A stretch of 64,000 bases of DNA from Octopus sinensis (lineage: Eukaryota), in assembly GCF_006345805.1 (NCBI RefSeq), contig NC_043001.1:104470001-104534000 (forward strand), written 5' to 3'. Below the pieces are notes generated by a model. The model was given only the letters and a program-made list of their open reading frames with translations, had not been told where the DNA came from and made no database searches. Positions 5,756-63,731 of this stretch are shown here, one piece after another (the first letter of the stretch is position 1; each line of letters starts with the position of its first letter). The translations under genes and the position numbers were made by a program.

Positions 5756-5817
5756 ATAGCTCCTTTTCTGTCAATACTTGTACGATTGTTCAGGTTTCTC
5801 AAAAGAACTCCATAACC
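5756..5817 (-). CDS. a exon (subtype A), 62 nt: [20 protein letters not shown](AT-)
   Basis: atatgtatag|GGTTAT...GCTAT|gtaagt. The next b exon is expected left of position 1, because 1-170 matches the intron block that precedes B-type b exons at 11.7k, 39.7k and 54.3k. Confidence 0.83.
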
Positions 5818-62800: not shown

Positions 62801-63731
62801 AGAAATCTCAGTCATGACAAATCTAGTTAGAAACACATCATAAAGAACAGGTGACTTAGATGAAACTGCACCTTGTTACATACTGTGATGTCACAAGTAG
62901 GCTAATGATATCGTTTACCTTATTTCTTATATGAATTAAGAGTCTTCAGAAAAACCTTCATAGATGACAGAATGTTGAAGGTATTAGAATGGACAAGGGA
63001 TCAAATCTAAGTCCATGCAAAATACCTTTCTAAGAGCTTGCTGCTACTAAATTTCATACACAACATTTGGCTGGACACCCAGGTTAGGGGTTGAGTATTG
63101 AGATTGATCCTGGAATCACATGCTTGCAAAGTAAACTACTTAAATGCATATCAATGCTTGTGCCTGCTTTGCAGGTGTAAGTGGATGGCTGTATTTTAAA
63201 TGGGTGTGGCCATAGATGGGTAGGGAAGATGTTCAATTTGCAACCACATGATTCCTGATTTAATCCCAATACCCAGCACCTTGGACAAGTGTTTTCTACC
63301 ACAGTTATTGTTTGACCAATTCCTTGTGAATAAAATTTGGTAGATGGAAACTGTGTAGAAGACCAGCTGTTGCTTGTACATTGAAGCCTCTGACTACAGC
63401 ACAATGTTATCTAAGGAAAAGACAAAGGCCAATACAGCTTCACAGTAGTGTTACCACAAGCATGGCTGTGAGAAGGGAAAAAGCATGATGAGATACCACA
63501 AGGCATCCAGTCAGGTGTTTTAACAATCCTGGACTGCTACTATTATTATCAATTTCAAAAAGTGAAAGGTAAAATTAACTTCACTGATATTTGAACTCAG
63601 AAGGTAGACAACAAAGACAAATACTGCAAAGCCTTCTACCCGATGCTTGAATCTCTCTGCCAATATACTGCATTGTAAATAAATCGTATCAACTAACCTG
63701 AGAGTCTTCGAAGTGTTTTCTTGCAAGTCTC
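5756..63731 (-). CDS. Partial multi-exon gene (open at both window edges) encoding a tandem 30-33-aa helical repeat protein; 18 micro-exons
   Basis: Manual splicing of the exons below gives [12 protein letters not shown] [131 protein letters not shown][fs][142 protein letters not shown]. All exons have a polypyrimidine-AG and a GT donor, phases are complementary, and there are no stops except through the 58-nt exon. No transcript evidence available. Confidence 0.85.
6900..7990 (+). mobile_element. 5'-truncated RTE LINE (ORF2 C-terminus plus 3'UTR)
   Basis: ORFs 6886-7326 and 7284-7526 ([59 protein letters not shown]), one frameshift, (GAT)n tail. Confidence 0.9.
8304..8337 (-). CDS. b exon (subtype A), 34 nt: (K)[11 protein letters not shown]
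   Basis: ttttttttgcag|GAAACTG...TGTAAG|gttagt. Confidence 0.87.
9672..9736 (-). CDS. a exon (subtype B), 65 nt: [21 protein letters not shown](K)
   Basis: ccttttctag|CATTAT...ACCAA|gtaagt. Confidence 0.85.
11099..11132 (-). CDS. b exon (subtype B), 34 nt: (K)[11 protein letters not shown]
   Basis: ttcttttacag|AATACTC...AACCAG|gttagt. Confidence 0.85.
11868..11987 (+). mobile_element. 5' stub of a non-autonomous Helitron flanked by a 37-bp direct duplication of host sequence
   Basis: Matches the first 120 bp of 39886-41244; 11831-11867 is repeated at 11988-12024. Confidence 0.7.
13413..13469. repeat. (GA)n microsatellite
   Basis: Direct reading; paralogous tract at about 21313-21378. Confidence 0.95.
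15620..15678 (-). CDS. a exon (subtype A), 59 nt: [19 protein letters not shown](K)
   Basis: atatttatag|GGTTAC...GCTAA|gtaaat. Confidence 0.87.
17799..17832 (-). CDS. b exon (subtype A), 34 nt: (K)[11 protein letters not shown]
   Basis: ttttcttttgcag|GAAACTA...CAAGAG|gttagt. Confidence 0.87.
18871..18935 (-). CDS. a exon (subtype B), 65 nt: [21 protein letters not shown](K)
   Basis: atttttctag|GAATAT...GCCAA|gtgagt. Confidence 0.87.
20510..20543 (-). CDS. b exon (subtype B), 34 nt: (K)[11 protein letters not shown]
   Basis: ttacttttgcag|AAATCTA...GACAAG|gtcagt. Confidence 0.85.
21990..22047 (-). pseudogene. a exon (subtype A), 58 nt, 1-nt frameshift: KYDVL[fs][13 protein letters not shown](K); pseudo-exon or assembly homopolymer error
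   Basis: atatttgtag|AAATAC...GCTAA|gtaaat. Length is 3n+1 while all eight sisters are 3n+2. One extra T in the T4 run (plus-strand a4 at 22031-22034) restores [18 protein letters not shown]. Confidence 0.75.
22870..23990 (+). mobile_element. Ty3/Gypsy LTR-retrotransposon pol relic (integrase region)
   Basis: [32 protein letters not shown] (integrase zinc-binding region), then [20 protein letters not shown] and [18 protein letters not shown]; multiple stops. Confidence 0.8.
25814..25847 (-). CDS. b exon (subtype A), 34 nt: (K)[11 protein letters not shown]
   Basis: tttttctttcag|GAAACTA...CGTAAG|gttagt. Confidence 0.87.
26406..26910. repeat. About 500-bp interrupted (TA)n microsatellite
   Basis: Direct reading; source of the poly-IY ORFs. 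Confidence 0.97.
26911..30432 (-). mobile_element. Young 5'-truncated RTE LINE, about 3.5 kb, with reverse transcriptase
   Basis: ORF 29380-30357 ([59 protein letters not shown]), LLYADDL near 29190, ORF 28172-28906, and a (CAT)n tail at 26911. Confidence 0.95.
27065..28150. repeat. Tandem minisatellite (about 55-70-bp unit, gtgctttttatgtgccaccggcacagaagcc...cacgttcggatg) in the RTE 3'UTR
   Basis: More than a dozen copies of the ttttatgtg[c/t]caccggcac motif, with higher-order blocks ending in ggtatcacaactactgtttccattgatatttgg. Confidence 0.9.
30644..30697 (-). ncRNA. Type I minimal hammerhead ribozyme motif
   Basis: AACCAC-CUGAAGA-A UGUC(13-nt loop)GACA C-GAAAC GAUC GUA-GUGGUU: perfect 6-bp stem I, palindromic stem III ACGAUCGU, GUA cleavage triplet, A.C mismatch at the base of stem II. 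Confidence 0.65.
33170..33223 (+). ncRNA. Type I minimal hammerhead ribozyme motif (second, inverted copy)
   Basis: Same as 30644-30697 but with one stem-I mismatch (GUAGUU). Confidence 0.58.
35128..35192 (-). CDS. a exon (subtype B), 65 nt: [21 protein letters not shown](K)
   Basis: ccttttttag|GAGTAT...GCCAA|gtaagt. Confidence 0.87.
37033..37066 (-). CDS. b exon (subtype B), 34 nt: (K)[11 protein letters not shown]
   Basis: tttcttttgcag|ATTTATC...AGCAAG|gttagt. Confidence 0.85.
37321..37715 (-). mobile_element. Non-autonomous Helitron, 395 bp
   Basis: Minus strand A|TCTTTATATATAAAAG...acccgagcaacgccgggc (hairpin)...CTAG|T; absent from the sister intron at about 53850. Confidence 0.8.
37878..38136. 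repeat. Foldback: two about 119-bp inverted arms (37878-37996 and 38018-38136) with a 21-bp spacer
   Basis: Arms are reverse complements with only a few mismatches. Confidence 0.9.
39886..41244 (+). mobile_element. Non-autonomous Helitron, 1.36 kb
   Basis: A|TCTCTATATCTATAAATGG...tagcacgatgacccag-tgttg-ctgggtcataatgCTAG|T; the empty site aaacatta|ttctcaaatt is seen at about 54465. Confidence 0.8.
42390..44045 (+). mobile_element. Heavily decayed RTE LINE (endonuclease to RT)
   Basis: Stop-ridden similarity to 29200-30400; near-identical duplicate at 56470-58080. Confidence 0.8.
45171..45229 (-). CDS. a exon (subtype A), 59 nt: [19 protein letters not shown](K)
   Basis: atatttacag|GCTTAC...GCTAA|gtaaat. 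Confidence 0.85.
47015..47856. mobile_element. mariner relic: two outward-facing 5' portions forming an imperfect palindrome
   Basis: ORF 47378-47674(-) [49 protein letters not shown] is a mariner N-terminal HTH; 47020-47300(+) is an inverted, more decayed copy of 47570-47856. Confidence 0.75.
49072..49105 (-). CDS. b exon (subtype A), 34 nt: (K)[11 protein letters not shown]
   Basis: tttcttttgcag|GAGATAT...TTTAAG|gttagt. Confidence 0.85.
49530..50100 (+). mobile_element. RTE LINE 3'-end relic
   Basis: Similar to 7350-7990, ends in a (GAT)n tail. Confidence 0.75.
51672..51727 (-). CDS. a exon (subtype B), 56 nt: [18 protein letters not shown](K)
   Basis: acttttttag|CAATTT...GCCAA|gtaagt; 9 nt shorter than sister B exons, still in frame. 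Confidence 0.85.
53553..53586 (-). CDS. b exon (subtype B), 34 nt: (K)[11 protein letters not shown]
   Basis: tttcttttgcag|GGATCTA...ACAACA|gtgagt. Confidence 0.85.
55625..56455 (-). mobile_element. RTE LINE 3'-end relic
   Basis: (CAT)n tail at 55625, 3'UTR core, and antisense ORF2 C-terminus near 56280-56450. Confidence 0.7.
56470..58740 (+). mobile_element. Heavily decayed RTE LINE (paralog of 42390-44045, extending further 3')
   Basis: ORF 57837-58118 [37 protein letters not shown]. Confidence 0.85.
61319..61555 (-). mobile_element. hAT transposase C-terminal (dimerisation domain) fragment
   Basis: [38 protein letters not shown] matches the hAT/SPIN-type motif FGSTY.CEQ.FS.M...KS..R.RLTDEHL. 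Confidence 0.75.
62445..62506 (-). CDS. a exon (subtype A), 62 nt, phase 0->2: [20 protein letters not shown](K)
   Basis: tatttatag|GGTTGT...ACTAA|gtaaat; length 3n+2. Confidence 0.8.
63698..63731 (-). CDS. b exon (subtype A), 34 nt, phase 2->0: [12 protein letters not shown]
   Basis: tttcttttgcag|GAGACTT...TCTCAG|gttagt. Confidence 0.85.

Follow-up and report, generated by a model that had tools for sequence, protein, structure and literature searches.

Several structural genes encode a protein repeat exon by exon, among them the collagens with their 54-bp exons, titin with its PEVK exons, and nebulin with its modules, the last of these arranged in super-repeats. The micro-exon genes (MEGs) of Schistosoma are composed of symmetric exons (multiples of 3, 6-36 nt) and give rise to small secreted products diversified through exon skipping. 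Neural microexons that depend on eMIC/Srrm are reported to combine a weak 5' splice site with a UGC motif close to the 3' splice site (PMC8797185), and in snake toxin genes introns are >85% similar while exon segments diverge (PMC2711939). For venom genes, conserved introns combined with accelerated exons were reported by Nakashima et al. 1993/1995, as cited in PMC2711939. Here, we analyzed a 64-kb stretch of the 2.72-Gb Octopus sinensis genome (C5:104470001-104534000, contig NC_043001.1), referred to below as the window, whose numbering is used unless C5 or C30 is given. We show that its 18 coding micro-exons belong to one large annotated gene, LOC115212235, which encodes an octopod-specific tandem repeat with two predicted helices and was built through amplification of a frame-neutral four-exon cassette. 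In this gene, paralogous exons diverge 2-5 times faster than the introns flanking them, which is a new finding.

An earlier reading of the window from its letters, hereafter the original prediction, had described 18 short minus-strand exons in which two types, b and a, alternate. When AG-(34 nt)-GT stretches that leave a frame open were sought on the minus strand, nine b exons were recovered (upper coordinates 63731, 53586, 49105, 37066, 25847, 20543, 17832, 11132, and 8337). All nine are 34 nt long and open in frame 1 only, that is, in phase 2->0. Seven of them have the donor GTTAGT and the remaining two GTGAGT and GTCAGT, and each is preceded by a pyrimidine tract terminating in (T/A)(G/A/T)CAG. 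The identical scan of the plus strand of the window yielded nothing comparable. The nine a exons interleaved with the b exons measure 62, 56, 59, 65, 58, 65, 59, 65, and 62 nt. Within the window, all eight a->b junction codons are AAG or AAA, both Lys, and coding sequence makes up 857 of the 57,976 nt of the array stretch (1.5%). The coordinates, phases, donor counts, and exon lengths of the original prediction, including the single 58-nt a exon, were thus reproduced, as were its junction lysines and its coding share of about 1.5%. The exons are listed below with their class, the repeat (r) they encode, and their presence in the RefSeq protein XP_036358878.1.

63698..63731, minus strand: b2 exon of r12, 34 nt, AG/GTTAGT, open in frame 1 only; in XP_036358878.1
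62445..62506, minus strand: a2 exon of r12, 62 nt; in XP_036358878.1
53553..53586, minus strand: b1 exon of r13, 34 nt; in XP_036358878.1
51672..51727, minus strand: a1 exon of r13, 56 nt; in XP_036358878.1
49072..49105, minus strand: b2 exon of r14, 34 nt; in XP_036358878.1
45171..45229, minus strand: a2 exon of r14, 59 nt; in XP_036358878.1
37033..37066, minus strand: b1 exon of r15, 34 nt, intact; omitted from XP_036358878.1
35128..35192, minus strand: a1 exon of r15, 65 nt, intact; omitted from XP_036358878.1
25814..25847, minus strand: b2 exon of r16, 34 nt, intact; omitted from XP_036358878.1
21990..22047, minus strand: a2 exon of r16, 58 nt, 1-nt deletion leading to a frameshift and TGA; omitted from XP_036358878.1
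20510..20543, minus strand: b1 exon of r17, 34 nt; in XP_036358878.1
18871..18935, minus strand: a1 exon of r17, 65 nt; in XP_036358878.1
17799..17832, minus strand: b2 exon of r18, 34 nt; in XP_036358878.1
15620..15678, minus strand: a2 exon of r18, 59 nt; in XP_036358878.1
11099..11132, minus strand: b1 exon of r19, 34 nt; in XP_036358878.1
9672..9736, minus strand: a1 exon of r19, 65 nt; in XP_036358878.1
8304..8337, minus strand: b2 exon of r20, 34 nt; in XP_036358878.1
5756..5817, minus strand: a2 exon of r20, 62 nt; in XP_036358878.1

A search of the conceptual product against 5.8 billion proteins retrieved XP_036358878.1, 'uncharacterized protein LOC115212235 [Octopus sinensis]', of 1935 aa. 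This protein holds the array translation verbatim except for four omitted exons and one residue, and both junctions that had been singled out for checking, 18871>17832 and 17799>15678, are found in it word for word. It covers 14 of the 18 micro-exons in the window and 66 of the 70 that make up the whole array described below. The four dropped exons are those of r15-r16 (37066-21990), including the frameshifted 58-nt exon (22047-21990, minus strand), which is one base short compared with its paralogues and contains an in-frame TGA. All 18 micro-exons map to LOC115212235, as expected for the coding exons of one gene. They are very probably constitutive or cassette coding exons of the central part of LOC115212235, an octopod-only helical-repeat protein.

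Terminal exons mapped by search place the first coding exon of LOC115212235 near C5:104644210 and the stop near C5:104334176 on the minus strand, a span of ~310 kb. Extending the search outward thus located both ends beyond the window, where they had been anticipated. The gene begins with ~12 ordinary N-terminal exons, continues through the 70 micro-exons and ~5 small C-terminal exons, and closes with a terminal exon of ~1 kb; intron lengths within the array vary from 0.7 to 13 kb. The description of the gene as hidden did not hold, since it is already catalogued in RefSeq as LOC115212235/XP_036358878.1 with 66 of the 70 micro-exons, and for O. sinensis the claim adds nothing to this uncharacterized locus. 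The related expectation that annotation pipelines would miss the gene failed for O. sinensis, apart from the four dropped exons, but was borne out in part by the splitting of the gene in other octopods. In Argonauta hians it is represented by two adjacent partial hypothetical proteins, and the O. bimaculoides orthologue is broken into at least three partial models:

LOC106877687, O. bimaculoides: N-terminus and nine repeats
LOC106881215, O. bimaculoides: four repeats, followed by intron read-through
LOC128247888, O. bimaculoides: C-terminus

In the literature, we found no paper that mentions the locus or the accession numbers of this gene.

To cover the whole array, 200 kb of flanking DNA was added to the window (264 kb in total) and searched with class-specific nucleotide hidden Markov models (HMMs). 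Exactly 70 micro-exons were detected, 35 of each type, and every one of them lies on the minus strand and keeps strictly to the b1-a1-b2-a2 order. The array runs from window +121464 to -108560, ~230 kb, and its 70 exons, when spliced, give 1124 codons without a stop except at two 1-nt indels. A chance origin of the 70 micro-exons is excluded because they lie on one strand, keep a strict order, and leave the frame open over 1124 codons. A length of 3n+1 or 3n+2, canonical AG/GT boundaries, and an open frame are retained by 68 of the 70, and toward the 5' end of the array three b exons of 31, 37, and 28 nt still conform to 3n+1. Besides the 58-nt a2 exon in the window, the second indel exon is a 35-nt b2 (C5:104540874-104540908; window +70874..+70908), which carries an extra base, AACGCTG versus AAGCTG in a paralogue. 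XP_036358878.1 treats this exon as though one base were absent, and the O. bimaculoides model LOC106877687 stops exactly at this point of the array.

One repeat of ~32 aa is encoded by a pair of exons, a b exon of 34 nt (2->0) and an a exon of 56-65 nt (0->2). Each exon pair adds 90-99 nt, and therefore the frame is kept. The a and b exon classes have their own intron flanks. Class a1 is characterized by the acceptor ..TTTT(C/T)TAG, the donor GTAAGTGA, and the peptide EYKDFxKEVNxYPxxFxxxxA, and class a2 by the acceptor GAATATTTATAG, the donor GTAAATAT, and the peptide GYEDLLxELxxxxIDKERA. Exons of class b1, with the donor GTTAGTTC, always precede a1, and those of class b2, with the donor GTTAGTTG, always precede a2. 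Repeats an even number of positions apart share an amino acid identity of 0.31-0.35, those an odd number apart 0.23-0.25, a period of 2. The repeats thus fall into two alternating classes, and the amplified unit is therefore the b1-a1-b2-a2 cassette of ~64 aa. The a/b alternation of the original prediction is real but incomplete, the true unit comprising four exons. No larger block duplication was found within the array, where best matches lie at even but otherwise scattered offsets and distant repeats are no less identical than near ones.

As in collagen, titin, and nebulin, a long protein repeat is produced here from many small fixed-phase exons through cassette duplication, with a higher-order super-repeat. 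In the octopod gene, however, two exons of complementary phase (3n+1 and 3n+2) are needed to encode one repeat, where those genes use a single symmetric exon. Its repeat sequence is unrelated to theirs, without a Pfam Nebulin match, and the family is confined to octopods.

An exhaustive HMMER search with the 1060-aa repeat region against 1.84 billion representative proteins matched four proteins, namely, the query, one O. bimaculoides fragment, and two Argonauta fragments. The Argonauta fragments are 28-34% identical and show the same two-class alternation as O. sinensis. Neither the N-terminal nor the C-terminal nonrepeat parts had homologues outside Octopus in our searches, and the unique C-terminal region has relatives in O. 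bimaculoides only. Between O. sinensis and O. bimaculoides, identity amounts to 82% in the N-terminus, 70-75% in the repeats, and 78% in the C-terminus. For r1-r9 and r18-r21, one-to-one orthologues, collinear and 70-75% identical, exist in O. bimaculoides; paralogous repeat pairs share ~33% on average and 64% at most. With relatives in Octopus and Argonauta only, the lineage specificity proposed originally is upheld in this protein set, and the guess of a cephalopod source proved right. LOC115212235 evolves fast, and its family is limited to octopods within the databases searched, whose coverage of squid and cuttlefish proteomes is not known. It resembles the Schistosoma MEGs in being lineage restricted and fast evolving and in carrying most of its coding sequence in tandem, very short exons. 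Unlike the exons of MEGs, those of the octopod gene (34 and 56-65 nt) preserve the frame only as pairs, and its product is a protein of 1935 aa with no obvious signal peptide when read by eye.

Divergence is distributed unevenly between the exons of the array and their flanks. Within classes, mean pairwise nucleotide identity was 0.55-0.64 for exons versus 0.73-0.88 for the adjoining 50 nt of intron. Identity of the flanks drops with distance, to background (0.36-0.46) by 100-300 nt in two of eight flanks and to 0.55-0.65 by 350-400 nt in the other six. Measured outward from the exon boundaries, BLAST similarity has a median length of 95-412 nt and a maximum of 700 nt, with 82-90% identity. 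Of 241 within-class pairs, 238 had exons more diverged than 600 nt of their own flanks. The median proportion of differing sites (p) was 0.40-0.43 for exons and 0.20, about half as much, for introns, with an intron minimum of 0.08; in the extreme pair, r23-r33, exon p was 0.40 versus an intron p of 0.08. Exonic synonymous divergence (dS) between paralogous repeats was 0.66-0.75 and nonsynonymous divergence (dN) 0.56-0.60, with dN/dS ~0.8. Intron divergence (K, four 100-nt flanks) was 0.22-0.25, and dN amounts to 2.4-2.7 times this value. Exon and intron distances correlate (Spearman 0.46-0.64), and neither changes much with position in the array. The snake venom toxin genes likewise have introns closer than exons among paralogues, dN/dS near 1, and exonic dS above intron K. 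Those are separate genes for secreted toxins, whereas the 70 octopod exons lie in a single, probably intracellular gene, and no evidence in this analysis ties the octopod protein to venom.

Two of the conserved flanks were delimited as follows:

15679..15838, minus strand: conserved ~160-nt element directly upstream of an a2 exon, also at 62507-62666, 45230-45389, 22048-22207, and 5818-5977
17649..17798, minus strand: conserved flank downstream of a b2 exon, beginning GTTAGTTGATA.GATTTATTTAC..GTGCAGTATATTGGCAGA and repeated after the other b2 exons

The a2-upstream element has at least 17 matches within the gene, 76-100% identical to the copy at 15679..15838 (most of them 87-94%), and is more conserved than the exon that it precedes. 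The sole match to the array flanks outside the gene lies at C30:7148825-7149011 on the plus strand and comprises the a2-upstream element together with ~27 nt of an a2 exon at 80-85% identity. We rejected the possibility that the flanks represent a genome-wide transposon, as the b2 flank and the a2-upstream element match this locus alone, apart from the C30 copy. Structured RNAs, microRNAs, and small nucleolar RNAs were rejected as well, with no Rfam match in the window and no convincing conserved fold. Single-sequence folds of the flanks were unremarkable except for one b1-upstream copy (z = -3.8), and Alifold energies for 16-18 flank copies were near zero, at most -3.4 kcal/mol. Pairing between donor and acceptor flanks as a means of enforcing exon order was discarded, too, RNAduplex scores for 150-nt flanks ranging from z -0.9 to +1.1 versus shuffles.

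Conservation of the flanks extends beyond O. sinensis. The motif AGGCAGCATATTGAGTTTGTG downstream of b1 is also visible in O. bimaculoides, where the C-terminus of model XP_014787006.2 reads past the b1 donor into the intron, producing the peptide RQHIEFV. This pseudo-peptide is encoded by several O. sinensis b1-downstream flanks as well (window 11050-11098 and 20460-20509, minus strand), so that conservation of this flank holds across species and not only among paralogues.

Over the whole array, 28 of the 35 b exons have, as raw counts, the donor GTTAGT and 26 of 35 the acceptor TGCAG. With TGCAG, an upstream pyrimidine-rich tract, and the weak donor GTTAGT, the b exons resemble eMIC-dependent microexons. 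This is a resemblance only, and the octopod exons, at 34 and 56-65 nt, exceed the shortest microexons in length. We infer from the sequences that the conserved flanks and weak donors may serve as recognition signals for the micro-exons. In such a scheme, the 100-400 nt of class-specific flank, together with weak donors such as GTTAGT on b exons, would be the cis signals by which 70 near-identical micro-exons are defined in order.

A further feature of the a2-upstream element is an AG/GT-bounded open stretch of 42 nt (62611-62652, 45306-45347, 22153-22194, 15783-15822, and 5912-5953, minus strand). Its length is a multiple of 3, it would sit in frame between b2 and a2, and its conservation exceeds that of the real exons. 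Both its acceptor and its donor are poor, and it is absent from every annotated protein. This stretch might represent a decoy or pseudo-exon, a cassette exon that is rarely used, or nothing of significance.

The contrast between exons and flanks is open to more than one explanation. The same pattern as with flanks held constant by a role in splicing could result if the introns evolved in concert or underwent gene conversion, or if divergence of the exons were accelerated. The flanks may be unconstrained, either because the cassette copies are young or because their introns undergo gene conversion, with the exons diverging faster than neutral under diversifying selection that would give each repeat a different surface. 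In favor of this explanation, exon divergence exceeded intron divergence in 238 of 241 pairs (0.40-0.43 versus 0.20), dN of 0.56-0.60 is 2.4-2.7 times intron K, and intron distance varies little with position in the array. Similarity that extends over 100-400 nt, in places 700 nt, is more than enhancers alone would lead one to expect, and a precedent exists in the snake toxin genes, whose exon segments diverged while their introns stayed >85% similar (PMC2711939). However, exonic dS is high, too (0.66-0.75), such that the contrast is not confined to amino-acid-changing sites, and in several flanks similarity fades to background away from the exon, as constraint would predict. Moreover, orthologues of r1-r9 and r18-r21 are far closer (70-75%) than paralogues (~33%); these copies therefore predate the split of the two species and are not young. 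The presence of the b1-downstream flank motif in O. bimaculoides also speaks against unconstrained flanks. We give diversifying selection next to unconstrained flanks a real chance, albeit one below even. Somewhat more doubtful, but tempting to consider, is a broader proposal in which the micro-exons are islands of rapid, possibly adaptive diversification. Their flanks would be kept near-constant by a class-specific splicing code or by intron-limited gene conversion, and an octopod-specific scaffold could come in isoforms of different length if exon pairs or cassettes were skipped, which would leave the frame intact.

The encoded protein consists of four N-terminal UBA-like domains, 33-35 repeats, a unique region of ~200 aa, and an Ala/Glu/Lys-rich tail of ~300 aa. 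Pfam matches above threshold, UBA_4 (43.2 bits) and UBA_8 (38.4 bits), were confined to the N-terminal 383 aa, where four copies can be recognized by eye, each mostly within one exon of 100-145 nt. The N-terminus, MGFNKALVVKRFSIDNW..., is UBA-like by Pfam, and no signal peptide was obvious there on reading by eye. Six repeats encoded in the window were modeled with AlphaFold2 from a nine-row in-register alignment of nonoverlapping paralogous and orthologous windows. The model showed two helices per repeat, with a mean predicted local distance difference test (pLDDT) score of 78 and a predicted template modeling (pTM) score of 0.44, in agreement with the tandem helical repeat of 30-33 aa deduced originally. 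Helix 1 (~12 residues, ..AKKLAxKYF) is predicted to span the a->b junction and helix 2 (9-10 residues, EYxDFxKEL) to lie within the a exon. Core positions L2, A3, Y/H6, F7, Y13, and F16 are conserved across the 35 copies and in Argonauta.

The absence of a recognized family name in the original prediction also proved justified, with no match in Pfam, PDB sequences, or PDB folds. A Pfam hmmscan of 285 aa of repeats at E <= 10 gave only noise (best E = 0.17, Alternative oxidase), and a profile made from 45 Octopus and Argonauta repeat units retrieved nothing meaningful, and no UBA protein, from PDB sequences. Foldseek, run against the PDB with the six-repeat model, whose inter-repeat geometry is uncertain (pTM 0.44), gave a best E of 2.5 and template modeling (TM) scores <= 0.23. 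The octopod repeat resembles TPR, Sel1, HEAT, and ANK repeats in its length of ~30-34 aa, its two helices, and the fixed spacing of small and aromatic residues (L-A-x-x-Y-F ... Y-x-x-F). It differs from these and from Nebulin in having no Pfam repeat-family match at E <= 10, and Foldseek detected no solenoid at E < 2 or TM > 0.23. The TPR consensus is W4-L7-G8-Y11-A20-F24-A27-P32, which the spacing of the octopod repeat does not fit.

A motif in the unique C-terminal region (ILYKNGVLFDGGMFRY...LRGERP), which we took to be SEP-like, was not supported by Pfam or PDB sequence searches. Assignment of this region to the SEP domain of the p47/UBXN family found no sequence support, with no Pfam match at E <= 10, no SEP match among PDB sequences, and an AlphaFold2 model of pLDDT 40, which is unusable.

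Given their position directly after four Pfam-supported UBA-like domains, the repeats might themselves be degenerate three-helix domains of this type, and the array a series of UBA-derived, putative ubiquitin- or ubiquitin-like-binding modules. The UBA-like domains (UBA_4 PF14555, UBA_8 PF22566) are present in four copies in the same protein, and the repeats are weakly similar to them by motif and profile. The repeat motif I-D-x-x-R-A-K-x-L-A-E-K is like IDYGRAKYYLEK in UBA-like copy 1, profile-profile alignment puts both motifs in register (P = 0.0066), and a three-helix stretch is predicted, at low confidence, after the array. However, the hhalign probability was just 5.8%, the repeat region fails both Pfam models and has no UBA family match even at E <= 10, and neither the 45-unit profile among PDB sequences (no UBA protein) nor the six-repeat model in Foldseek (nothing at E < 2) pointed to this fold. 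The octopod repeat has two helices in ~32 aa, the UBA domain three in ~40 aa, and the UBA-like domains are mostly encoded by one exon of 100-145 nt each, not by an a/b pair. Derivation of the array from UBA domains thus appears improbable. More improbable still, to the point of being very unlikely, is that the array is a decaying, untranslated remnant, composed of pseudogenized repeats or produced by annotation. The two exons with frameshifting 1-nt indels, the dN/dS of ~0.8, and the lack of a homologue of known function would fit such a remnant. Yet 68 of the 70 exons keep their length class, AG/GT boundaries, and open frame over 1124 codons, the hydrophobic core positions are kept across 35 copies and in Argonauta, the O. 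bimaculoides orthologues are collinear, and intact N- and C-terminal coding exons lie on both sides of the array.

As to function, our low-confidence working guess from the sequence is an elongated intracellular helical-repeat scaffold that spaces putative protein- or ubiquitin-binding UBA-like modules from the C-terminal tail. Several points weigh against our view of the array as translated exons of such a protein, recognized through their flanks. Exon usage is drawn from three independent annotation sets (O. sinensis RefSeq, O. bimaculoides RefSeq/UniProt, and Argonauta hians) rather than from reads. Among the 70 exons, the 35-nt b2 and the 58-nt a2 carry 1-nt indels, which may reflect either decay of part of the array or assembly errors at those bases. 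The dN/dS of ~0.8 among paralogous repeats amounts to weak average constraint, and with a pTM of 0.44 the packing between modeled repeats is not established. The function is pure inference, with precedent for the UBA-like domains only. The flanks lack conserved RNA structure and pairing of intron ends, and in some introns their similarity, at 400-700 nt, extends further than expected for splicing enhancers.

Two stretches outside the array resemble parts of it or of the UBA-like domains. The linker between UBA-like copies 3 and 4 (XP_036358878.1 residues ~225-300) contains degenerate repeat-like motifs, for example, DRDRIAQIEFCKTYKLFKEK. The first ~48 residues past the array (~1444-1490) are predicted, with low confidence, to form three helices and contain a UBA-like LDYGR motif. 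The linker motifs and the post-array LDYGR helices are hints of a common ancestry of the array and the UBA-like domains.

What LOC115212235 adds is an undescribed octopod-restricted repeat family with 35 copies in a two-class super-repeat, for which there is no Pfam, PDB, or literature record. Its extreme architecture of 70 phase-alternating micro-exons over 230 kb breaks the annotation of O. bimaculoides and Argonauta, and gene finders and aligners designed for micro-exons could be benchmarked on the locus. The excess of exon over intron divergence turns the locus into a compact natural experiment in which constraint on splicing signals, concerted evolution, and diversifying selection could be told apart. 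If the micro-exons are indeed islands of diversification, the splicing signals, and not the coding sequence, would be the most conserved part of a repeat array. The locus has as yet no bearing on a major open question.

The introns themselves contain transposon remnants, visible as open reading frames at 29380-30483, 28172-29122, and 3840-4358 (all minus strand), one with an RVT_1 reverse transcriptase domain and one with a MULE transposase domain. The third of these, which neighbors the RVT_1 one, has a weak, subthreshold match to a PHD finger (21.1 bits versus a cutoff of 24). Short peptides at ~43790-43917 and ~57834-57917 (both plus strand) are reverse transcriptase-like by eye. Part of the variation in intron length (0.7-13 kb) is due to such remnants. 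In the intron between the a1 exon at 35128 and the b2 exon at 25847, an (AT)n microsatellite of ~256 units adjoins an array of a 67-nt satellite with a 193-nt higher-order unit (26407-26910 and 27078-28145).

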